Assembly: GCA_047495785.1 (NCBI GenBank)
Contig: JBLDXI010000003.1
Span: forward strand, 930,001 to 994,000
Length of the DNA: 64,000 nt
Origin: Lepidodermella squamata
Lineage: Eukaryota > Animalia > Gastrotricha
Direction: 5' to 3'
Shown: in pieces, positions 3,528-64,000 of the stretch
How the letters are laid out: each line of letters begins with the position of its first letter
Numbering within the stretch: the stretch's first letter is position 1
The notes under the pieces: generated by a model
Told to the model about the DNA's origin: nothing
Databases searched by the model: none
What the model saw: the letters and a program-made list of their open reading frames with translations, nothing else
Translations under genes and position numbers: made by a program

Positions 3528-4056
3528 ATTTGAATTAGACATTTTGGACATTTTCGTCGAATTTGATTGGCAAACTAGGAGGAGATTGGTAACAGTTTTT
3601 AATTGGCGACGGAAAACAGATGAGTTCAATTGTCACGCTTCGCCGATCAAAGAAGGGGAAAAGGAATTGGAGGAGTGTGTCTAAATGAATTAAAAATTAA
3701 ATTGATAGAATCCTGTACATTAGTAATCAGGCTTCTAGTTCGAACTGCGATTGAACACCTTGAGTGAAAGCGAACTAGACCTCAGAGACAATGATTAAGC
3801 TTCTATTTTTCCTGCCTAGTTAATTGCTAATACGTCATCGCTGTGATTTTCTGTGTCGCATATAGCCGCTAAAAGCTATCACGACATCCTTTTAATTAAT
3901 CATTCATCCTGGTTTTAGTAATTGGTCCGATACGCAATGCAACGATCACGCACAATATTAGGGTAGCAAATTAGATTACAGTTAATAAAATGTCGACCCT
4001 CCGTTAAAAGCCTCGGCACAGCGTCAACTTTTAACGTCATTCAACTTCAAATCAAG

Positions 4057-4365
4057 ATGCGAAATATTTACCATTTCCTCAAGCTATTATCCTTCACATT
4101 TTCTTTGATTGGAATCTTAACCGCAGCTAGTGAAGATTCGAGAAAGATAAAATGGAAGATGCTGGGCGAGAAGATAAATTTGTTGGCTGAGAAAGACGGC
4201 TGGCGTTTAACCAATCTACTTCATCGAATGGTCAACCGGGAATGGAGGCGGCGGCTGGAAAAATGCTTGGCTGTTTTCAGCTCGAAAGCCATCTGCAACA
4301 ATCAGTCTAGCTTCTACATTTGGGCGAAGATTATGGCAAGCAAAATTATGGATGGCAGCGAGTAA
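4057..4365 (+). CDS. Secreted C-x9-C family, type A copy 2 (102 aa)
   Basis: Signal peptide; WRRRLEKCLAVFSSKAICNNQSSFYIWAK; AATAAA downstream. Confidence 0.9.
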   Translation: MRNIYHFLKLLSFTFSLIGILTAASEDSRKIKWKMLGEKINLLAEKDGWRLTNLLHRMVNREWRRRLEKCLAVFSSKAICNNQSSFYIWAKIMASKIMDGSE

Positions 4366-5201
4366 TAATTGGATCCCCAAAGATTATACATTTCGATCAC
4401 CATTTGTTCGTTAAAATAAAGTGGGTCCATCTATAATTTGATCTGAGTCATTTTCCCATGCGTCAAATGTATTTCCATCAACTCAAAATCATGAACAACT
4501 ACTTCCTAATGATGACATAGTAATCATATTCTCTTATTTTCTATGGATCTGTGGCCTATTTTGTAGAAGGTGGAGGGTAAAATTAACTGATACAAAGCTG
4601 CCCTTCATGGATCCCATACTAATTCTAAAGGTCAAAGGTCACAGATTAAATCCTGCACGTTATCTCTTTGTCGTTGTTTCCTATTTCCTATAGTAAGTCG
4701 GTAGCAGCTTTAATTCGCCGAAAATGCCGATATTCAACGTTACAGTTGCGACTTGCGACTCCAGTTTATTTGTATAGTTCACAGTATTGGATTTCCGGAC
4801 GACATAAGCTAATTGCGACGTCATCGGGTACAAGGCATAATTTATTCCAGCATCCAGTAAAGAGTTGTGCACGGGCCGGGCCGGGTGTGGGCCTGATTTT
4901 CAATACCCGTCCTCATGTATTTCTTCAAACTGTTTTCAGTATCTATGGCAAAGTAAAACTTTAAGTTATTGCCTTAGCGAAATCGTAATCTTGAATCATA
5001 AATTAGCTGATTTTTCTTAAAAATGAAGTATCTTCCAGGTTTTTGATCAACGCGAAGGAGAAAGCATCGATTTCTTTTACGGGCCGGGCCGGGTTTGGAT
5101 ATATTTACTGACGGTCTTGAGTTCATCCGGGATATTTATCGAATAAAAAGTTTATATTTCTCCTGGTTGATTCATCCGTGCCAACAAAATATTTGGAACT
5201 T

Positions 5202-22034: not shown

Positions 22035-23248
22035 CTACTTCTTGTCATTGGCTGGTTTCGATTTCAGCGGAACTTCGCAAATGAACGACTTTTCCTTGTA
22101 ACACTGCTGGTCATTCCACTTCCAATTGAAGTCGCCCCGCATTTCTAGACAGAACTCGTTCCCCTAAGATCAGAAAGACTTACAAAAGCGAATGGTAGAA
22201 TTTTCAAGTAACCAAAGAGCTATCTGGCTGATTTTCCTTCCAGAATGAGAATCCGGCGTCGGACATGGTTTTTGCCACCTGGCCTGCTCGCTGAGGGATC
22301 CAAGACCACAACTTATTGACTTCAGGGTTCGAGAAAGTGGTCCAGTAAGAACCAGTCGAGTTTCTCAAGATATTGGTTGCACCGATCCAATAGGTTCCAT
22401 TGGAGAAGACTAATAGGAATAGGTGAAAGCTTTAAGAATATTGATATAACTTCGCTATTTCTTGATTTTATGAGCAACAAGCCTTATGTCTAAATCCTTA
22501 ATAACCTGAGCTTCAAGTTTTTTACCTTCAGTGCTGTTGAGGTAGCGAGCAATGGATTCTTGTTCGAGCCGGCTCTGGATGTTAACGAGCTTGCTTCCTC
22601 TCTTGGCACAATCAATCATAGCAGAGAGCCAATTCAGCGACTTGTCCTTAACGAATTCATAGCACTTCCCAATAGAGGGGCTACCTACAAATCCAGCCGG
22701 ACATTTCGCCAAAGTCTTCACTAAAAAATAAGCCGATTTTCAAAGAGTGAAAACAAAGTGTAAGTCTTACAGTATTCTGGAGCATCATCCTCGCAGAATC
22801 GTTCATCAGAAGCGTCGGAGCAGTCTTTTGAGCCATCGCATAGCTTCGCCTTGTCAATGCAAGTCTTATCAGAATCCCAGCACAAATGATTCTTCTCCTG
22901 CTCGCACTTCTGCTTTGGCGATAGCGTGGTGGTCGGAGGCACCCAAGGAGTATAACGGCCGGCCATGTATTGACCACGGCCGTAATAGACCTGCTGAGTG
23001 GTTGCCGGAGCTGGAGTTGTAGTTTTCGCCAGATCCTCCAGCGTATCATTGAAACGTGTCTCAAAGCGCTCGAGTTTACGCTCGAATCGGTTCAACTGGT
23101 TCATAATACGAGCGACAAGATTGTCACTCTCCTGGTGGTACTTGCCATAGCTCCGCTCTTCCTCCTCAAAGTCATCATCCTCATTTTCAAAGGCTTTCAG
23201 GCCAGAAACGAGGCATAGCAGCCCTATTATTACCAAAACTTTCATCAT
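22035..23248 (-). CDS. Secreted protein: coiled coil + LDL-receptor class A repeat + C-type lectin domain (4 coding exons)
   Basis: Signal MMKVLVIIGLLCLVSG; LDLa CIDKAKLCDGSKDCSDASDE; CTLD KCYEF..WLSAMIDC..YWIG..QPD..WND..C..FICE; GT-AG introns keep frame. Confidence 0.9.
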
Positions 23249-23431
23249 GTATGTGTGTATGTATATCCTGAAAAGAGAATTGGGTGTTATGGTTGATAAA
23301 CATGTATTAATTAAACTTACACTCAATTAGCAATTCCGCGCACTCCAAACGACCAAATGAACCCGTCACGCGAGGTTATCGTAGTGCGTTCTATAGCTGA
23401 TTGCTGAATTCATCCTTTGTAATTTTTTGTT

Positions 23432-29661: not shown

Positions 29662-30566
29662 GGTTAATTTCGCTTCTATTAGTTTCAAATTACTGCAAAA
29701 ATGAGTAAATTGAAGTTAACAAATTCGAAAAGCTTTAGGAACTTCAGGTAGAAAACTTGATAATAACTGTTTAAGTTTGATAGAAATGAATGTAGCGGCG
29801 TTTTAAATTCCTAGCTGCTGAGACTGCATAGCTGTTTTACTGAAGGTTACCCAAAAAGAATGCTCTTCAAAAATACGGTTGGTAATGTGATAATGTGATG
29901 TTTTATACGCTTTTTTCTGCCCATAGCGTCAACAAGGTGTGAAAAAACTCGTTAGAAGTGAATGCGCATTTTGTAAGCAAGCATGTTTTCCTCACGTAAG
30001 GGTGGTATTTACATATCAACTCAACTTTGTTACCAGAGCAGTGACAAAAAACTCAAAGAACAGTTTACTGAGGGGCGCATTGGAGCCATAATCATTATGT
30101 TTTAGGTTGTAAGTAGAAATTTTTCCATTCTTCTGATTGGCCGAAAGAAAATCAGCGGCAAATTCAAATAATATGTAAATCACAAAAAATGTCTTTAAGT
30201 TTTAAATCCAAAATAAATAAATAATGTTGATTATCAACTATTTTCGGTCAAAATATCCCGCCGGCGGTCTATTCAGAATCCCGCTGTGTTTTCTGCTGCT
30301 GATACCAGATTTTGGCTTACTAGCAACTTTCTTGTCTTGTCACTTGTCTATTCGTCGTCTTTCATTACCACAAATATGTGTAACTTTTCGAACGGACGTA
30401 TAGTTGTCGCCAAGTAGTTCGGTCACATTAATCACGGTAAATCGGTCACATTTTATTCTTAATCTCTTCGTTCACTTTCCCGTGAACCATTTCATCACAG
30501 CTTACAGCTCATCACAAATCACAAATTGTTAATGATCACATTGGTTTAGAATCTTCGGTTTTGAGA

Positions 30567-32752
30567 TTAAATAGCACGCCAGTACTGCGACAACCTTATC
30601 ATGAACACTTTCATTAGTTGCCGCGGAATAGATGAAGGCAAAGCTGCGCAAGTCATGCTTAGCATTTTCTTGATAATTTTTTGCCTGATTTCGATTGACT
30701 CGGCTGAAAGTAATCTCAGGTTAATGCCCATTCTTAGCAACGGTAGAACGTGTCGCGCTGTAACTTGAAATAGCGACAATTGTAGTTATTTTAAGGTTTT
30801 AGCTCAAGTGTCCTTACTGTGCGCATAAGTAGTCAGCCTTCCAACAATTCCCTTGAATGCTTCTTCGAATCGCTCGAAGTCTTCCTCGGGATCACCGCCA
30901 AGATCCATGCAATCAATTCTTTCGAAAATTCTTTTTGATGTTTGCAAGAAATCGTCGCACTGCAGTATATATTGCTGCATTTTTTCGATGTTCTGGTTAA
31001 GGAAATATTTAGTTTAATTGCTGATTGCTTCTTATTGCTTACATCGCGCTCAAGGCCTCTTTCAATAGCTTTCAGCTGAATTTCCTCCAGCGTCCAATGA
31101 GACCTGACCCTCACGCCGTGGTTATCCAGTAGCCATTGCTTGTAGAAAGCCATATCTCGACCGTATCTTCCTTTCACAAACTCGAGATGCCAATTAGGTC
31201 CGAGATATTGAAACAGCGAGCCTGTCATCGCCAGCCATTTGAGTGACTTTTCATTGTTTTTCATTATATCATGTCGTTAAATAGAAATCAAGTTAGCTTA
31301 CGTTAGTTGTCGCGGTGTGATTTGCTCGTGTAATATTCACTTTTCGCTGGCCAGTAGTTGAAGCTTGCAATGTCAGTTTTTTCGAACTTGATTGAATTAT
31401 TCTACTGATGTTGTCATGTGCAGAAGTGAGATTTTCAGCTTTCAATTTTGTTAAAATCTGTTAAGGAAGTATTCAATCATTACTAAAACCGCAGCATTTC
31501 TTACCGCTTCCAACCCAGAATTCGTGATGCAACATTCAAGATGCAAGACGCAAGGTGCAACTTGAAATACCTCTTTGGGTAATAGGAACATGGGTAGAAA
31601 TAATCTGTGCCAGCCGGCTTCCTCGCGTTCGCGTTCGTTCATCTGGTGCCACTGGTCTTCTATTTCATCAAATTTCCTTTCCTCACCAACAGCTTCTTCA
31701 TGTCGAAAATCCTTGGTACAAAAAATGCATGCATGGTGCGAGCCGTGATGCCCACACGCTTGAATGTAAACAAGCATAGGGTAATCGCATATCAAAATAA
31801 TTTTGATGCGGTATCGAATATTATTTTTGTCCCGCACTCCTTCCATGGCCCATTTCACCAATTCGTCAACCACCGGTTGCAAGTATTTCCTGACTGATTC
31901 GTAAGACTCCTTGCCTTCGTAGATTAAGAGCTGAAATTCTTCGTTCAAACCAGTTTTCTTTTTCTTTGTCACAAAGCATAACGTCGCTTGTACCAGACAA
32001 TCCCCAACGGAGGTTCGTCGAGGTGTCCCATCGATCTGCAAGCGTACTTCGTTCAGCATACGAGATTTCAAGTGACCAGATGCTATCCATTTTTCCAAAA
32101 ACTGATCCAGTTTGATTCTTACGCCTCTTTCCTTCTCGTTTTCGTCTTAAAAGCGAATGAAGCATATTTAAAATTATTGACTAACCAATCAGCAAACCTT
32201 CTATGCCATCGATTTCCAAATAACCGGACATGACTCTGCGAGCTCTTATTAATCCAGGACCAGATATTCTCGCTCGGCCTAAAAGCTTGGCAATCGGATA
32301 GGCCGAACGCGTAGGTACAAGCTTCGATGCTTGTTGCTCCATTACTCTATTGAAAAGAATATGGTCAATTGACACATTAACGTCTTTTTCTTTTAATGAA
32401 AGTTTTACTTTTCGCAAGTTTCTGCTCGTTCTATCGATGCTTTCACACACCCATCTGGTCTACGCGAGGAGACCTCGGGCAGATTTACGACTTTTGCTTT
32501 CATTTCCAATCTCTCTATTTTTTCATTCCCCACATAATGCCGGAATGCAGAAGAATTCTTGAAGTTATCCATATGCTCCTCCAACGCTTGTTGAACGCGA
32601 ATAACTTTTTGCTGCCTCGACAGCTCTCGATAAGGCTTGCGGATAGCTTTTCGTTTAGCAATAGTTTTATTGACTGGGGCTATTCTAATAATCGCGGGTC
32701 TCCCAGCTAAATCGTTTCCCAGCAATACTCCTACCGCTGGGATGTCGCCCAT
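30567..32752 (-). CDS. RAG1/Transib-like DDE transposase, 7 exons, ~620 aa, apparently intact
   Basis: Motifs in RAG1 order: RKPYRELSRQQK (NBD-like), QIDG, GKESYE, ICDYPM, GSHHACIFC, PCVLHL, TTYAHITARHV, SAESIE. Six 47-62 bp GT-AG introns remove all stops and frame changes. Confidence 0.88.
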
Positions 32753-33343
32753 GATACAATACTTGGAATTTCGATAATTTAACACTATTTTTATAAATAT
32801 GAACGTTAGTAACGAGAATTTTTACTGAACTTGAAATGAAAGACGATCTACACGTTTTACTAGCGCACTACCTGTCGACAAGGCGCGGAAATCGTCGTCA
32901 CAAAAATTGTTTGCCTCGAAAGGGTACTATTTTCCTACCTTGTTTGAAAGCTACCGCTGCGGCAGTTTTTAAAAAGTAATTTTGCTTTACGTAATTCATC
33001 TTGCTTGCTTGATAATAGTTATTTAGATTCGGCTCAATTGGCAAACGAATTATGATCCCTTTTCAAGATATTACTAATCTGATCGGCACTTTTGAAAAAT
33101 GCTCGACTATTTTCAAAATTGACGACCATCCGTTCTACGCCAAATTTTTCCCAGCGTGAGATGACGTTTTTTCACCCTCTGTGGATGCATTAAGATTCCT
33201 ATTCTAGGCGCGATACCAAGCCATCCCGCGGTGTTTTACGCATTCAATTTAGATACATTTATCGCTGAACCATCTTGGAACTAATTATTTTAATTTATTG
33301 CATTATTTCATATTTTTTATATTTTAGATATATTAACTCTTGA

Positions 33344-34228
33344 ATGTCGGAAATAAGGATGTCCTGGAAAGACGACGTTCGGGTCTTCTCCATCGAAGAA
33401 CGTACCGTGGCAAGTTTGCAAGCAGAAATTCTTCGACAATGGAAATGGAAACTCACAGGGTCGTTTCCACTAGCGATCAAGTACTTTGACGGAAGCTTCT
33501 GGGTTTCGGTCGTGGACGAACAGGCGTTGGCCCGGGCGTTTCGGCTCAGTCCTGACGAGCCTCCTCATTTCAAACTGACCATCGCCGAACCCGAAGAAAA
33601 TGACCTAAACGAGGTAGTCGCAAGGCTAACGTTGAACTCGAGGCCTTCATCGCGGCGCAGCAGCCTAGCAAGTGCGCGGTCCGATCGTTCATCTCGTTCC
33701 TCTGCGCGTTCGTCGGTTAATTCTTCAGCACACTCTTCAGCTCGCTCATCTGTTCATTCTTCAGCCAACAACTCGCGGTCGGCGAGTCCTGATCCCGACG
33801 TGAATCCTGATGCCACTGTGGCGCCCGATAAAACTTTGCTGCCAGGCTGGAACTTTCGACGGACAAGTGTACTGATCGATACCCCGCGTCGCATCCCGAT
33901 TCGCGAGAAAATGGCTATGCTTATTAATGCTGCTCCTGCTCGCCAGACTGGCCCACGTCGGCATCTCTACTTGAAGGTTGGCGTTAACATTTAACATATT
34001 TCATAAAATAATATTTACATTAATGAATATTTAAAGTGCGAACTCGAAGCCTTCGCTGATCTCATTGACGAACACTACGATCGATTTCTCGCGAAAAATA
34101 CATCCGAGCCCGAGCTGGCCAACATAATAATCGAAGCTCACAAGAATTGGACCGACGTGTTTGGAACACGGCCGCTTACTGGCGCAGCGAAAAAATTGAA
34201 AGAACTGATTCTTACATACGTAAATTGA
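33344..34228 (+). CDS. Transposon accessory protein: PB1/ubiquitin-like N-domain, Ser-rich linker, Myb/SANT-like helical C-domain
   Basis: DDVRVF...IKYFDGSFWVSVVDEQALARA...FKLTI resembles PB1; intron ~33976-34036; exon 2 CELEAFADLI...SEP...FGTR...KKLKEL; lies inside the TIRs. Confidence 0.7.
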
Positions 34229-35539
34229 TTAATTTTTTCGCCTGATTCATTTTCGTCTGATAAATAACTTTGGCTATAAATTATATGCGAATGCGTGAAG
34301 ACATCTTTCACAGTAAGCCAAACTTATTATTATCTTAAAATTAACAGTTGATTCATGTATTGGAAATATTATAATTTTTTGCTCTCTTTTCTCGTTATCA
34401 ATTAAATATAAATAAATGAGCGTTGCCATTATTAAGTAATGCCGCTTGTCGTTCTTTTGCATCTCGCCGCAAGTCTTGAACGAATCTACGGACTTATCAT
34501 CTATCACCCCACGGATATAATCGACCATTTAGTTGGCTTATGGAGAATTTTATAATAGCTGTGTGAAATATCAATAAAATCTCTCGAGAAATCTTCGACT
34601 TCTGAAGGCGATGTTCATGTATTTAACTTTTGATCGCTGCCTCTATCTATCTACATGTAACTATGGATTATTCTGGAAAAACTCCTATGTCAAAATACGT
34701 CTTGTCTTTCAGTTATAATTGCAAATACCTCCGTGATGTTGACATTTTGAAACATGTGTTTTATAACGTGAATCTATATTGTTGGATTAACTTACCATAC
34801 TTGCCAGTTGCTTGCAAATTTTTTCACTGATCTTTCTGCTCTAAAAAGGCATTTTTTATTTGATATTTTTTGCATGAATGACTGAGATATTTTTTTCCGA
34901 GTCTTCGCACGTGCCGAGCCAATACGATTATTTTTAATAAAAAATTCGAAATTTGAAAATCGCGGTTTTATTTGAATCAGCCAATGGAAATCTTCGTTTT
35001 TTCGCGCCAAAAAACCTCAAACACAATGATATCAACACGCGACAATCAGCGGTAACCTGAGAGTTCAAAATTCGATAAAAAATGTACCTGAATGCTGAAA
35101 GCTGACTATCTCGAGTTGAATGGAAAAATCGAAATTTTTCAAGGCGAATATGTTTTTTTTAATTCTTAAAAATTTTATTTTCTCAAAATTGCGCTCAGAT
35201 TTTATTACATATTTTTCGTATTTTTCACAGCCATTTTTGCGTTAAATTTTAGAAATAAATTGTTGCCGCAAGGATCATGCGTAAACTGCGAAAGCGCTTT
35301 ATCAAATTGTGTTATCTAGTAATGAACGAGCGACACCAATTACACAGGCAATGCGACCAAGCAGCCGCCAAAATCGATAGCAACAATAATTCACAAAATG
35401 CGCGTTGCGGCGGCCATCAAGTAACAATTAAATAGCGCGGTCCATAAATGTAGTAGCTAGTAATCATCGCTTTCACGCTAGACCGATATGTGAGCGTAAA
35501 CATCACTGGATCGCGATATTTTACAAAATTTCCACCAAA

Positions 35540-38162
35540 ATGTTTCCAAGTTCGTGGACAGAAATTATTTTAAGATTCTTCGCAAACCGGTTATCGCGCA
35601 TCAATTTACCTGCAGTTTTCATCAGTTTACTAATTACGGGAGTTATTTACATTTTAATCATGTCAAATTCACCGTTTGGACTGGTTATGGTGTCAAAAGC
35701 TAGGCGTGATCGAAGCGAAGTGACGAAATTGCCGTCGATAATGCGACCGGTTTTGCCGCATCGCGCGGCTCTTTTCGACAAGGCCATGGCTCAACCATTT
35801 CCCGAGGCGGCTAATTATGACGTGATCGGAAAGGATATGCCATGTCCGTTTCAGAGTAAACGAAAGTGTGAGTGGCCTTTCTTCGCCCAATCCGGTTTTG
35901 GGAAATGGCAGCTTCCTATCATCTGCTGGAGGTCGAAAAACATGTGAGTTTTTAATATAAGCGTCCCTAGTTACGCCCTTAGCGTTGCTAAGGACGCATG
36001 AAGATTCGCAAAGGTCAAGCCTTAATATGGTTAACAGGAAACTGCCCGTAACTAAGGACGCTTGTTTTTGAAATATCCTTAGCAACCTGATTTTGATTCG
36101 TAGACTCGGCCATCTGGTGCCGCAGGAGGCTGAAAATTATCGCGGGCTCCACATTGTGGTAATGCGGCAGGACAATTACTCCAGAGTCGCTTTCCAGCTG
36201 TCCTTTGACACCTTCACATCTGATGAAGAATTGTCCAACTTCCTAATCCACCACGTTGCCATTGGAAACTTACTTATACTAGCTAGCCATGACGACGCTG
36301 TGAGCAATCTACGCCCGTTATCTCGCAATCTATTACGCCATTTCGGCTCGAAAGAGATGGAAAACTTGGCGTTTCGGGATAGCTTCGTGATGGTTGGCGT
36401 GAAAGGGGCTGACCCGGGCCGAGCGATTGAATCCATTCGCCGTAAGAGGATCTCAGAAGAGTTTCCAACTGAAGTCTCAATTCATGGATGTTTCGAGCCT
36501 ACTGAGTGTAAGTTTCGGAAACAGGAATCCAAACTCTTCATTCTCGAGTTTTTAATAGTCGAGCCGATGAAACCCCTACCGTCCGAGCGAGAATTGAGAT
36601 TGGATCGGAGGGAAACTATCAGGAAAGGCATTTGGCCCAACTGCGGCCTTAACGCTGTCTGTTCGCCTGGACACCTCTTTCCAATGCATATCAGGACAGG
36701 GATCATTGAAGCTCCGGGTCCAGAGCTTTGCATAAACAGCCAACTAGTTTTCCATGCCGATTACCACGCAGGCTCGAGAGGCTTCAATCTAGCGATTTAC
36801 GACCCAGAAGAAGGCTTGGTAGTTTCGCACAACTCTTTCGATCCTACAGTGCATGGTAACATTTTTTTAAAGTGGTTTAAAATGTTATACAAAGCGATTC
36901 CAGAGCCCACTAGAATGTTTCAATACCTAGAAACGGTAAAGGCAAACCAAATCCTGTTTGGAGTAATTCACGAGGACGCATCGCAAGATAACGTTTCCGA
37001 GATACTGACGGAAAAATTTGGGGTAAAATTAGGAGCAGAGCTGTACTCGTTTTCCATCGGCTATTTCATCGCCCAACTTGGTTCAACTAATTTGGCCCTC
37101 GAAAGCCTACGGCACTTCTACCCTGGGATTCCTGAGACCACAGAGCCAATGGAGCTATCTACTTGCCTGCCGAAGCAAAGTAAGCAGATCGATCTTTTGA
37201 AATGATAGCATTGTTTTTTCTTCAGTTCGAGGTCTTGCTTTGTCAAAGCACGGTGGAGCAGCGCAAACTGACGAAGGAGCGTCTCTCAAACGCCAGTTTT
37301 GCGAGACCTTTCCGGATCAGTACGGAGAATTATGTGCTCAGCCTTTCCTTCCCTCAAACGAGCGCTCATCGGAAAATGGAGCAACAATCGCTAGCTTGTT
37401 TTCTTTCACGTTTCCTATCATCGTAATGGCTGGCAGCGATCTTCGAGGTCTCGCTAAAACCCTGGAGACAGTTACAGCGAAACAGGTCCCTGTTGAGCTG
37501 GATTTGGCTTTTAAAGTTGTCTGCGCATCAAGTTACATGACCCAAGTTTTTGGCGAGGAAATAGAACAGCTGACAAATCTCTTCGAATTTCGATTATCCC
37601 TCTTAAAATCTGAGAGCTACGACGATTTGTATCGAGATTGTCTGGTCTACGGAGCCGAAACTGCTGAAGTTTTAAAGGTAGAACTTTAGTCAAAAATCAA
37701 ATTATTGAAAATATGTGTTTCCAGGAGGATTGGTTCCTTTTCATCGAGCCAAACGTGCAAATAGCCCCCGACTTCTTACCATTCATCAGGCGGGCGTGGA
37801 ATGCCACGAAGTTGAATAGCTACGCAATTTCTGGTTGGACCAAGGATAGCAATACTTCTGCGTCTTCATCCGACTTAATGACGGCCGCGCATTCCATATT
37901 ACCCTCACCGTGTTTTCTTGTCAGGTATGATTACCTGCTCAAAACAGTGATGCCTCGATACGATGAATGCTGTTCAAGAAGCCGATCATCCAAATGGCCC
38001 GTTTCCACCGGGAATCTAGCCACTATTCCTAGATTTTCGAGATGCTTCAAAGAACCGAATCCTCACAGCTCGTGTCTAGTATCTAATGCGGGCGAGAGTG
38101 AGGCGAATTCATGTTGGGAGAAAATTCAACACCACTCAAACACTTCCCTTAGGGCGTATTAA
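35540..38162 (+). CDS. Second POMGNT1-like gene (ILEI x2 + GT13-like); 3' end uncertain
   Basis: TM segment; FRDSFVMVGVKG; GSRGFNLAIYDP; FIEPNVQIAPDF; SGW; colinear with the 25374 gene. Confidence 0.78.
35959..36063. mobile_element. Small intronic foldback/MITE
   Basis: Inverted repeat AAGCGTCCCTAGTTACG / CGTAACTAAGGACGCTT. Confidence 0.5.
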
Positions 38163-60817: not shown

Positions 60818-61719
60818 ATGGCTAAAATCTATTGTGTGGTGTCTTCGGAGGCGAACCCACCGCGATTGATTGAGATCGCGGAGAACCAAAAGCATGCCGA
60901 ATTGATTGCAGCACTCCGAACTAATTTGCTACCGAAAGAAACGTCGATAGAACTTTATTACGATGTAAGTTCAATCTTTTTTCATTGTGTCGCACTCATT
61001 TCGATGCTTATCAATCTTAAATTTAAGCTGGACGAAAAGACGGACGTGCTGATTGCTACCGATGAGTGCGTAAGTAGAGTGATCAGAATGCACTTGGTAT
61101 TTCGTCCCAAGGAGCCGGCCTACTTTTACATTCTACCCGCTACAGCTAAAACGGACGAGAATCCAATCATACGCCCCCCGCTTGCATCAAGTTCAACCTC
61201 TAGCTCACCAACTGGCTTGAATATGGGGCCATTGAAGACACCAAAGCCGCAATCAACGTTGTCATTGTCACGGAAGCGCCTTTTTGAAACAAAGAAGGTC
61301 CGCTTTGAGGAAAGTGAAGACGAAGATGAAGACGATCCCCCGAGCTATAAGTAAGATATCGATTCGTCTACGGAAAGACTGGTTACTCAATGTCTTTTAC
61401 ACTCAGATATCACAGCAGATTTGCTACTCCATGCAGGTAGGCCTGTCCATTTGAACATTTAGAATGTAGGTATATGTTGTTATCAATTAGGAGATTGACT
61501 CGCAAACGATTCAAAACTTCGTTTAAGGGACGGCCCGGCGATTATTCCCCGGCGGAAGAAGATTGCTGCCAAGCGATCGCCGAATGGCTGAATAAGAAGC
61601 GCAAAGATTTATCGGAACCACATTTTTTTGAGGCGATGGCGGCCTTAAAGGTCGATTTCGAAGAGACGTTTGGCACTAGAAAAGTGGCCAACATCATCAA
61701 AAAGATGAGCGATCTGTAA
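60818..61719 (+). CDS. PB1-like + Ser-rich + Myb/SANT-like protein, homologue of the 33344 gene; may be spliced to the downstream recombinase
   Basis: Three in-frame introns; C-domain SEP-x16-FGTR-x6-KK colinear with the 33344 protein. Confidence 0.7.
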
Positions 61720-61763
61720 ACTTCGCATTTGTTGACACCTGTTGATTCCTTTTCCATTTTAGG

Positions 61764-64000
61764 ATGGCTGTTGTTAAATTAAAGCTTGGTAAACTAGTGA
61801 AGCTTGCCGAGCTTGATTTGGTAGATTCATTCGAATCGCTCAAGTCGCAAGCAATGACGCTTTTCGAGATTGATTACCGAAAGATGAATTACATGTGGGG
61901 TAAGTAATATCATTTGCTGATCGATAAGCTTGTATTTGGTTTCATTCTAGTTTGTGATTCTGAACCCATTATTCTCGACGAGACGCAGCTCAAATTAGCT
62001 CTGAAAACGGGAGGAGTTCTGACGATTGATTTGGTGCCAGAATCAGACAGCGTAACAGTTACCAGCGGAATCAGCTGGAAAAAGCAGCCTAGAGCTCGGG
62101 GGCGATTCTTGAAGCAGAAGAAGAATTCCAAACCCCGTCATCCTGGTCTGGGAAGGCCTTGTCCGAAGTGTTATAAACCTCTTCGTGACAAAACATCGTT
62201 GGAGCGTCATCTTATGTCTGCTGCATGTCCGATGGGCCCTACTGAATCAACTGATTTGCCATCATTATTAGCCGAGTCGAAGCGGTTAGTCAGTTCGCTA
62301 AATAATTAAGAATAATTACGTATCATATTGAAATTGCAGGACGGCGGTGATGAACAAGTACGCTTTAAAAGTGGATAAAGAAGATGAAGGTGAAAAATCT
62401 CCATCTCAGCCTTCCGTTAACGTTACCGTAAACAACTTCCAGTCCAGCTCGAATGCGATCACTGCCCCCAGGCAGGGGCCGAAAACGGGTCGTGAAGTTG
62501 AGAATTTCATTAACGACTTTCGCAAATCATTTGAGAATCCTATATTTGGCTCGAGTAATCGAGCCCCAGCAACTGTCAAGAAAATTATTGAAGGTGCGGC
62601 CCAGGTTATCAATCTTTGTGGGTACAAGTTTGTCGACGATCTATATACTCGCGAGGGATTTCAAGCTCTTAAGCGGCCTTTTAAACGAAATATCAAGTTC
62701 GGCACGAAGAAGTCGTTGTGTCAGGCCTACAGAGAATTTGTAGAATTCCTTGAATACTATGATGACCTCGGCATTGACGAACGTCGTCGAGTTCTACTTC
62801 TCTCCTTTTTGAAAAAGGCTCACGACTCCTTTAATCGCGGCGTCGCAATTGACAATGCCGATAGGCGGGTACGTATTTCTGAAGCGATAAGAAATAGAGA
62901 ACTGCCCACCTTTTCTGAGGTCTGTCTTGTTCTTGATGTTTTTCGAGCTAGGGTATGTTGAAGCATTTTTAATTATTTGAGCTAACTTTTAAGTTTTCAG
63001 GTTGAAGAACTGGACACTAAGCCTGAAATCGACGTTAAAGATTTCAAATTACTTCTCGGTTATGTAGGTTTCAGTCGTGTCAAACGCTGCGCTATTCGCC
63101 CGGGAGCTCTGACACTGATGAAAGTTTCCGAATTCAATAAGCCGGTCTTAGAATCTGAAAACGTGGTTCTAGTACACGTGAAAGGTGAGAGTTTTGAGAA
63201 AGTCCGTAATTTCATCTATGAACGCTTTTCAGGTCAGAAAGCGTCAACATACAACGACGGTTTTGTTAATTACTCCAAAGACGTCTACGACATTTGTTCC
63301 AAATATCTCGAAGACTGGCGTGTTTCATCCGCACTAGCGCAATTCTTCATCTGGCCAACTACAATGAAAGCCGTGACATCCCAAGACCTGGGAAGAGTCT
63401 GCAAGGACTTTTTTCGAGAATCAGTTCAGAAAGACTTTTGTTTTACTGATTTCCGTCAGTATATTCAGACGGTATTCTCACAAACTTGTTCTGATGAGTT
63501 TGAGAAAAAATGGTTTAACAGGATCATGCAGCACAGGTAAAAAATTAGTGACATTGTGTTTGAGGTTGTAAGTTGAAAAAAATCTGCACGCTGATTGGTC
63601 AGTTGGCTCGTATCCATGACTCCGCCTAGCTACTTGATCGTGCGATCCATAAAATGTTTGCAAAAAATATCTTTTTATGAATGGTTTTACGCATTTGTTG
63701 GAAACGCGTGCTACGATACGGCCTTCATAAAAATAATAAAAGCCACAAATTATATAGATCGCACGATCAAGTAGCAAGGCGGAGTCATGGATACGAGCCA
63801 ACTGACCAATCAGCGTGCAGATTTTTTTCAACTTACAACCTCAAACACAATGGACCTTACTAAGTCGGGTTAACTTGACTGCTCCGCTATAGTGATGACG
63901 TTGGACGACAATACTACGAAATGGCTATGGCACCCAGGTTTCATGCCAAAATGGGTCAAAAAATCGAGTCCGAAATGTTAATTCGAGAGAAAAATTGGCT
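61764..64000 (+). CDS. Tyrosine recombinase (Crypton-like) with PB1-like domain and zinc finger; runs off the window
   Basis: CPKC..RHLMSAAC finger; catalytic-type motifs AIRPG, VKG|QKAS, TDFRQ, MQHS|DDVGRQYY; five in-frame introns. Confidence 0.82.
63552..63852. mobile_element. MITE of the same TIR family as the RAG-like transposon (301 bp)
   Basis: ~95-bp near-perfect TIRs beginning CATTGTGTTTGAGGTT; GA on both sides; lies inside intron 63537-63892. Confidence 0.92.

Follow-up and report, generated by a model that had tools for sequence, protein, structure and literature searches.

Transib and RAG1 are characterized by a 5-bp TSD and by CAC-heptamer (RSS-like) termini, and ProtoRAG carries a convergent kelch-repeat RAG2-like partner. 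Chapaev transposons, as compiled in Repbase, have TSDs of 3-4 bp. Chapaev, CACTA/EnSpm and Mirage reportedly form the CMC supergroup, a grouping said to go back to Yuan and Wessler in 2011. A CMCT clade, which unites CMC with Transib, ESTA, Plavaka and Lanisha, has been described, with C(2)C, H(3-4)H, CA..TG termini and 2-5 bp TSDs as clade-wide traits (Kojima 2025, PMC12730594), and DUF1280, which corresponds to Chapaev, was grouped with RAG1 by Majorek et al. (PMC3985635). TSDs of 2 bp are also known from animal CMC families, namely TRC/Spongebob and CNEST. Because some Transib relatives have TSDs of 2-3 bp (bioRxiv 10.64898/2026.08.26.747230), TSD and termini taken alone are a weak criterion against Transib.

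Here we analyzed a 64,000-nt window of the Lepidodermella squamata (Gastrotricha) genome (GCA_047495785.1, contig JBLDXI010000003.1, forward strand, positions 930,001-994,000), in which an earlier note had described a RAG1-like two-gene transposon. The element is very probably an autonomous, recently active cut-and-paste transposon of the CMC(-Transib) kind and represents a rare, apparently undescribed family, "undescribed" being judged against 1.84 billion representative proteins and Pfam.

Ends, genes and recent mobility of the element

The transposon spans window positions 30093-35028 (4.9 kb) and ends in CAT...ATG (CATT...AATG). Its TIRs are 16 bp each and identical at 14 of the 16 positions, the left one reading CATTATGTTTTAGGTT and the right one, in reverse complement, CATTGTGTTTGAGGTT. 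Because their longest exact seed is only 5 nt, the TIRs were missed by a repeat scan and were recovered by a degenerate pattern search, in which the 16-mer had four matches across the window where 0.24 would be expected. Three short motifs, TTTCCATT, GATTGG and ATTCAAATAA, were found in both subterminal regions.

A copy of AT lies on each side of the element. An exact empty site was found in a contig of run X1, which comes from the same organism. In it, position 30076 is joined to 35029 via 15 letters, and its sequence, GCCATA+ATATCAAC, equals the filled site less the element and less one AT. This confirms a 2-bp TSD and indicates that the insertion is polymorphic. A second case of a 2-bp TSD was found at a MITE of the same family, which is flanked by GA/GA and has arms of ~120 bp that begin with the same 22 bases. 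The CAT...ATG ends and 2-bp TSD proposed in the earlier note are thus borne out.

Word depth rises from ~67 outside to 250-450 inside the element (~4-6 fold), with the step exactly at both ends, and pieces of X1 contigs begin exactly at 30093 and stop exactly at 35028. Several other flanks are present in these contigs, and the copies are at least 99% alike. Comparing this copy with the X1 contigs, six indels were identified, all outside the predicted CDS: two in the left subterminal region (30336 and 30420), two in the right non-coding region (34593-34597 and 34796), and one each in transposase introns 4 (7 nt) and 5 (1 nt). Coding differences between copies amount to two synonymous and two non-synonymous ones in the transposase and two, both synonymous, in the partner gene. 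The element has therefore been mobile recently, as its multiple near-identical copies and polymorphic insertion show, and a family both intact and polymorphic is probably still active. The earlier description of the element as a TIR transposon with two genes, intact and apparently active, is supported.

Predicted splicing of the transposase gene yields seven exons, separated by six GT-AG introns of 47-62 nt, and 621 aa without a stop, in agreement with the ~620-aa uninterrupted ORF expected earlier after removal of six short introns. The position of intron 3 is kept in relatives at ~30% identity, L004 among them. The spacer between the two divergent genes may act as a bidirectional promoter for both. 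In the transposition cycle that we propose, the transposase would bind the CATTGTG... ends together with the subterminal GATTGG-type motifs, excise the element and reinsert it by cutting the target with a 2-bp stagger, which would generate the 2-bp TSD, and the same enzyme would mobilise short derivatives such as the MITE.

Table 1. Features of the element and of its MITE derivative, in window coordinates.
Feature	Position	Strand	Content or basis
Left TSD copy (AT)	30091..30092		empty-site contig; sequence
Left TIR	30093..30108	+	degenerate pattern, contig start; likeness to the MITE end continues to ~30114
Left subterminal region and transposase 3' UTR	30109..30566	-	motifs common to the right end
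Transposase exon 7 (predicted)	30567..30763	-	end of HxxxxH, SAESIE (E578/E581), stop codon
Transposase exon 6 (predicted)	30818..30992	-	terminates in YAH of the H556...H561 motif
Transposase exon 5 (predicted)	31043..31246	-	gene model; flanked by indel-bearing introns 4 and 5
Transposase exon 4 (predicted)	31302..31457	-	homologous exon in L004 follows the conserved intron position
Transposase exon 3 (predicted)	31505..32145	-	RNase H-like core D203, E244, D285; zinc motif C295/H-rich/C304/C307
Transposase exon 2 (predicted)	32198..32346	-	gene model
Transposase exon 1 (predicted)	32409..32752	-	ATG 32752-32750; basic N-terminal region
Spacer between divergent genes, 591 bp	32753..33343		gene layout
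Partner exon 1 (predicted)	33344..33976	+	~90-aa N-terminal domain (weak PB1-like lead), then Ser/Arg-rich linker
Partner exon 2 (predicted)	34037..34228	+	gene model; holds the stop codon
Right non-coding and subterminal region	34229..35012		sequence, motif comparison
Right TIR	35013..35028	-	degenerate pattern, contig end
Right TSD copy (AT)	35029..35030		empty-site contig; sequence
MITE, 301 bp, non-autonomous, same family	63552..63852		remaining two TIR-pattern matches

The divergent partner gene

The partner gene lies on the + strand, divergent from the transposase, and is predicted to encode 274 aa with one 60-nt GT-AG intron. No homologue was found for its product by word-index search and no Pfam domain was detected; together with the divergent orientation, this agrees with the earlier claim that the partner is unrelated to RAG2. 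The protein is probably a family-specific accessory factor, possibly a PB1-type interaction module with an RS-rich linker; because the single-sequence AF2 model is unreliable (pLDDT 37), a feature score of 0.84 is all that points to PB1.

In the relatives, other neighbours were observed, namely a weak Ulp1-like protease gene on L005, the locus of a DUF1280-like relative, and an unrelated divergent ORF on L004. The partner showed no likeness to the ORFs adjoining the relatives' transposases. Such variable neighbours, as well as the absence of a homologue and a Pfam domain, would fit an ORF, captured or arisen de novo, that rides in the element and is not a transposition partner. We consider this possible but rather doubtful, since the ORF is intact with a clean GT-AG intron, the differences in it between copies are all synonymous, the indels all avoid it, and the word depth over it equals that over the transposase gene.

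Fold and kinship of the transposase

An AF2 model of exon 3 only (pLDDT 74) shows the order b1-b2-b3-a1-b4-a2, with D203 ending b1 and D285 coming after b4. In the structure comparison suggested earlier, this model matched residues 544-822 of mouse RAG1 (Z 12.0, 217 residues aligned), covering preR, RNase H and ZnC2, and scored lower with BbRAGL (Z 10.1), HzTransib (Z 7.7) and the next-best integrases (5). The DEDE, CxxC and HxxxxH motifs align with the RAG1 core, in agreement with the motif series of the earlier note. C304-x2-C307 and H556-x4-H561 are present in the spliced protein, the CxxC is kept in relatives, and G-x-E-S/T, with the fourth acidic residue E244 at the position of RAG1 E662, is found in every close relative. 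The catalytic residues are most likely D203, D285 and E581, the last being assigned from the H+20 motif spacing only. For exon 1 and the N-terminal region no family was detectable, and the likeness to a nonamer-binding domain suggested earlier gained no support from a PDB sequence search with exon 1.

A RAG1-type fold is, however, non-discriminating, because predicted CMC structures also match at TM 0.7: an atlas shape search listed only CMC-type clusters, the nearest predicted structures being Transposase_21 and DUF1280 clusters (TM 0.69-0.76). To our knowledge, no CMC transposase has had its structure solved or its reaction reconstituted, and RAG1 is therefore the only possible PDB match for any CMC enzyme. 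That HzTransib scored below RAG1 suggests a general likeness of fold and not close kinship. Moreover, the spacings from D to CxxC (19) and from H to E (20) are identical in the arthropod CMC protein P0012, and an EGKESY motif and H(4)H are common to the element and P0009/P0014.

At the sequence level, phmmer searches of the 1.84 billion representative proteins matched P0008, P0012 and P0013 (E 1.4e-4 to 9e-4, library-wide), which are arthropod Transposase_21-related CMC clusters, as well as the DUF1280-like P0009, and no match to RAG1/Transib was found among these proteins. Alignment with CMC-type proteins by hhalign gave probabilities of 96% (E 4e-9) and 97% (E 1e-10), which indicates sequence kinship of CMC type. 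PDB sequence searches with exon 3, a 12-sequence profile and exon 1 returned chance matches only, RAG1/Transib not among them. In Pfam, the best match was Transposase_21 (E 1.3e-4, 21.7 bits against a cut-off of 28.6), matched in two of seven family members, and DUF1280 came next (E 0.07, 13.2 bits against 25; P0009 itself reached 22 bits against the same cut-off). Across the seven family members, DUF1258 (Mirage) gave no match up to E 5, and none of the RAG1 Pfam models matched. Because all Pfam scores stay below the curated cut-offs, they do not place the element in a named superfamily.

As 2-bp TSDs have been described for animal CMC families, the element could belong to a family already catalogued in Repbase/Dfam (animal Chapaev, Mirage or TRC-type EnSpm) and be nothing new. 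We judge this unlikely, as the best of the 1.84 billion representatives is 32% identical, over a fragment, no Pfam model passed its threshold, a word-index protein search with exon 3 gave nothing useful, and the genome's own protein is missing from the protein collections. Word-index searches with the partner gene and P0009 were likewise unproductive. Six close relatives were found among the representatives, all of them metagenome fragments of ~30% identity, and two scans of metagenome contigs revealed no related locus.

The earlier note had placed the lineage between Transib/RAG and CMC. If the family were an intermediate or sister of Transib/RAG1 in particular, and nearer to the ancestor of RAG than known CMC groups are, it would tell us about how V(D)J recombination originated. 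This would be in line with RAG1 as the best solved-structure match, with the acidic residue at the E662 place, with an H(4)H spacing and T-x-Y-x-H-x4-H motif that resemble RAG1, with the protein-language-model search (DUF1280 0.97, RAG1 clusters 0.96, Transposase_21 0.94) and with the grouping of RAG1 and DUF1280 by Majorek et al. (PMC3985635). Nevertheless, this placement is not supported and is very unlikely, as the shared motifs are CMCT-wide, the structural likeness has the general explanations given above, CMC but not RAG1/Transib was matched by sequence or profile at the thresholds tried, and the ends, TSD and D-x-P fit CMC, with P0012 having the same motif spacing. In a related version, the family and its metagenomic relatives, perhaps with DUF1280/Chapaev-like proteins, would be the closest living branch to Transib/RAG1 on the CMC side, one in which the H(4)H spacing and a fourth acidic residue have been retained; as an active outgroup amenable to experiment, it could then be used for dating hairpin-forming, RSS-type cleavage, although we hold this, too, to be quite improbable.

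Because RAG1 likeness is common to the whole CMCT group, we regard the element as representing a family that is new and rare but of a known kind, and not as a special relative of RAG1, and the picture of RAG origins is unchanged by it. The clade from which RAG1 arose gains an intact, polymorphic family in one of its sparsely sampled parts. The family would also provide a practical CMC system for structural work and for reconstituting the reaction, with a compact 621-aa enzyme, ends of 16-22 bp, a natural MITE substrate and a 2-bp target stagger, in which it could be asked what small family-specific partner genes do.

Comparison with known systems

Compared with RAG1, RAG1L and Transib, the element has the same preR-RNase H-ZnC2 fold, a DEDE-like acidic set, and CxxC and HxxxxH equally spaced to the catalytic residues, but it differs from RAG1/Transib in lacking a sequence-level match, in its 2-bp instead of 5-bp TSD, and in CATTGTG termini instead of a CAC heptamer. 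Unlike that of ProtoRAG, its partner is divergent, of 274 aa, without a Pfam domain, and not kelch RAG2-like. The 2-bp TSD would fit Mirage, but the DUF1258 match is absent. With animal CACTA/EnSpm the element shares the best Pfam match (Transposase_21), D-x-P after the second Asp and a TM of 0.70-0.73. TSDs of 2 bp are seen in TRC/Spongebob and CNEST as well, and within CACTA/EnSpm (otherwise 3 bp) the TSD fits the animal TRC type only. Its termini are CATTG and not CACTA, CCC or CACGG, and arthropod CMC proteins have H(3)H in place of its H(4)H. With Chapaev it shares the top language-model match, TM values of 0.69/0.67, EGKESY and H(4)H (P0009/P0014) and the hhalign value of 96%, and differs by the sub-threshold DUF1280 score and the 2-bp TSD; the DUF1280-like relative on L005 has its protease gene in place of the partner. 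While the element stands apart from the CMC/CMCT group in scoring below every Pfam cut-off of the group, in an identity of at most 32% and in an orphan partner gene, it shares with the group an RNase H-like DDE core, C(2)C and H(4)H, CA...TG ends, a 2-bp TSD, detectable sequence homology and a multi-gene organization, which is common in the clade.

Boundaries, copies and insertion polymorphism of the element

When Logan contigs of X1, a sequencing run of the same organism, were aligned to window positions 29700-35400, contig pieces started exactly at 30093 and stopped exactly at 35028, and the mean word depth was approximately 250-450 within the element versus 52-72 in the flanks. Distinct loose flanks were joined at 30092/30093 and at 35029, which indicates that further copies reside elsewhere in the genome, and less than 1% of positions differed between the X1 contigs and the window copy. 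Loose ends at 33481, 33516 and 34920, together with a joint from 33703 to 31384 carrying 5 extra letters, indicate that internally deleted or rearranged copies are present elsewhere as well. A 747-nt X1 contig contained 377 nt identical to the left flank, after which 30076 was joined to 35029 in a 15-letter junction ending GCCATA. Taking the element and one AT out of the filled site leaves GCCATA and then ATATCAAC, the sequence read in this contig, which shows a TSD of 2 bp and a polymorphic insertion. This contig carries a small difference 12-16 bp left of the insertion point, by which an origin as an excision product appears disfavoured; the data suggest that the empty site belongs to a distinct haplotype in which the insertion never took place.

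The left end of the element at 30093 reads CATTATGTTTTAGGTT, and the reverse complement of the right end reads CATTGTGTTTGAGGTT, matching it at 14/16 positions. A generic repeat scan did not report this TIR pair, since it has no exact seed longer than 5 nt, and a degenerate 16-mer search of the 64 kb found 4 sites against 0.24 expected. The remaining two sites are the ends of a MITE that belongs to this family and measures 301 bp; its arms, of approximately 120 bp each, are inverted and near-perfect, and they begin with the same 22 bases as the large element does at its left end. The large element is flanked on both sides by AT and the MITE by GA. The ends as read, the empty site in X1 and the modelling of both genes bear out the earlier note's description of a two-gene transposon with CAT ends and a 2-bp TSD. 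The MITE falls within 60818-64000, a region read as an intron-containing tyrosine-recombinase element, and is therefore a nested insertion.

As for the host setting, the window is identified as metazoan by neighbouring ORFs, one with an ILEI domain (E 9e-25) and another with an LDL-receptor class A domain; its introns are short, and the large element is situated approximately 1 kb upstream of the ILEI ORF. The right flank at 35049-35236 was represented in X1 by two haplotype contigs that differ at 13 positions plus indels, each at about half the flank depth, indicating a heterozygous or mixed sample. In X2, a pond metagenome, one 151-nt contig matches the transposase core over window 31631-31781 apart from one difference, which indicates that the host or a close relative was present in the pond sample.

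Predicted genes and a putative transposition mechanism

Coordinates of the element, its predicted exons and neighbouring features (window positions)
Feature	Position	Strand	Basis
Large element	30093-35028		
Right end	35013-35028		
Predicted transposase exon 1	32752-32409	-	GT-AG joining
Predicted transposase exon 2	32346-32198	-	GT-AG joining
Predicted transposase exon 3	32145-31505	-	GT-AG joining
Predicted transposase exon 4	31457-31302	-	GT-AG joining
Predicted transposase exon 5	31246-31043	-	GT-AG joining
Predicted transposase exon 6	30992-30818	-	GT-AG joining
Predicted transposase exon 7	30763-30567	-	GT-AG joining
Predicted gene 2 exon 1	33344-33976	+	
Predicted gene 2 exon 2	34037-34228	+	
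MITE	63552-63852		
Host ORF, ILEI domain	36093-37205		
Host ORF, LDL-receptor class A domain	22721-23326		

Joining of minus-strand frames at GT-AG sites predicted a transposase gene of seven exons and six introns (47-62 nt), with an uninterrupted spliced ORF of 621 aa, in agreement with the approximately 620 aa and six introns proposed earlier. All six indel events between the window copy and the X1 contigs fell outside the predicted coding sequence, including a 7-nt one in predicted intron 4 and a 1-nt one in predicted intron 5, a placement with a chance probability of approximately 0.009 given that 54% of the element is coding. In addition, the metagenome contigs L001 and L004, which carry relatives of approximately 30% identity, have a GT-started interruption exactly at the intron 3 position; in L004 the interruption spans 54 nt, runs from GT to AG and precedes an exon whose homology to exon 4 is recognisable. 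Indel placement and intron 3 conservation both support the predicted splicing. Among the copies compared, the transposase CDS had four substitutions, two synonymous and two non-synonymous, and both differences in gene 2 (2/2) were synonymous.

Gene 2 encodes a predicted 274-aa product and diverges from the transposase gene across a 591-bp spacer. No Pfam domain was found in its product, no homologue in the protein search and no paralogue in the window, and it showed no likeness to the ORFs adjoining the relatives' transposases. A feature search related its N-terminal ~90 residues, which precede a Ser/Arg-rich linker, to PB1 domains (score 0.84), and a single-sequence structure failed (pLDDT 37). 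We take a PB1-like N-terminus as a lead and treat gene 2 as an accessory gene specific to the family.

Taken together, the data establish an element with defined boundaries, inverted ends and a target duplication of 2-bp stagger. It exists in several near-identical copies, is polymorphic for presence or absence, has a miniature derivative and encodes an intact predicted DDE-type enzyme whose RNase H core carries a Cys/His insertion. Both ends of the element share the subterminal motifs TTTCCATT, GATTGG and ATTCAAATAA. The transposase may bind these motifs and the terminal CATTGTG... repeat, and would cut out the element and integrate it with a 2-bp stagger; it could also mobilise the MITE in trans, and the spacer between the genes may act as a bidirectional promoter.

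Fold and sequence kinship of the transposase

An AF2 model of exon 3 only, based on a 12-row alignment (pLDDT 74), displayed strands and helices in RNase H order, with D203 ending the first strand and D285 directly following the fourth. RAG1 chains ranked top in Foldseek (E 4e-5), and VIA-align gave Z 12.0 over 217 residues for mouse RAG1 544-822, 10.1 for amphioxus RAGL, 7.1-7.7 for HzTransib and 5 for retroviral integrases. Because both methods matched the model to RAG1, the assignment of QIDG, GKESYE, ICDYP and CIFC to D600, E662, D708 and C727/C730 proved structurally sound. To our knowledge, transposases of the CMC (CACTA(EnSpm)-Mirage-Chapaev) clade have no solved structure, so that RAG1 is the sole PDB match obtainable for any enzyme of the clade. 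An ESM Atlas shape search with the exon 3 model returned Transposase_21 clusters from plants, fungi and rotifers, a DUF1280 cluster from cnidarians and a CMC cluster from arthropods (TM 0.69-0.76, rmsd 3-4 A), with no RAG1 cluster among the representatives listed, and feature-based search scores were 0.97 for DUF1280, 0.96 for RAG1 and 0.94 for Transposase_21.

At the sequence level, the transposase appears nearly an orphan: phmmer with exon 3 against 1.84 billion representatives yielded 13 matches at E < 1e-3, the six top ones being fragments of 99-266 aa with 31-44% identity (27-40% in alignment A2), two of which, P0001 and P0003, were located on short metagenome contigs. The other matches of interest are full-length: P0008, P0012 and P0013, whose arthropod clusters show a relationship to Transposase_21, DUF1258 and Plavaka, and P0009, with a sub-threshold DUF1280 match. 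The Pfam models Transposase_21 (E 1.3e-4, 21.7 bits versus 28.6) and DUF1280 (E 0.07) were likewise sub-threshold, and none of seven family members (0/7) matched the Pfam RAG1 families. Profile-profile comparison gave 96% (E 4e-9) with the DUF1280-like pair and 97% (E 1e-10) with the arthropod CMC trio, so the family seems about equally related to both. DUF1280 corresponds to Chapaev and DUF1258 to Mirage, and RAG1 has been placed beside DUF1280 (Majorek et al., PMC3985635). The metagenome contig L005, carrying the DUF1280-like/Chapaev-like P0009, has a same-strand downstream ORF (3764-4549) that weakly matches Ulp1 protease (Peptidase_C48), at E 0.001 and 19.4 bits versus a cut-off of 20.7.

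Probable placement in the CMC/CMCT clade

In the predicted spliced protein, the second Asp lies 19 residues ahead of CxxC and the second His of HxxxxH 20 residues ahead of E581, spacings equal to those of RAG1. Both are also the same in P0012, an ordinary CMC protein. C(2)C and H(3-4)H are common to EnSpm, Mirage, Chapaev, Transib, RAG1, Plavaka, ESTA and Lanisha, most of which have CA..TG termini and 2-5 bp TSDs, and ESTA likewise matches RAG1 in HHpred (Kojima, PMC12730594). TSDs of 2 bp have been described for the CMC elements CNEST and Spongebob/TRC, and 2-3 bp TSDs occur in Transib relatives (bioRxiv 10.64898/2026.08.26.747230). All RAG1-like and RAG1-unlike features are thus within the known range of the clade.

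The evidence places the element in the CMC/CMCT clade (the latter including Transib) as a rare orphan family, and not in a lineage specifically between Transib/RAG and CMC, as the earlier note had proposed. What holds of that reading is a two-gene transposon of RAG1 fold that has CAT ends, makes 2-bp TSDs and is probably still active; its status as a special intermediate is not supported. The acidic residue in G-x-E-S/T, invariant in close relatives of the transposase, and the H(4)H spacing that the transposase has in common with P0009 and P0014, neither decisive, point slightly towards the RAG1/Chapaev side.
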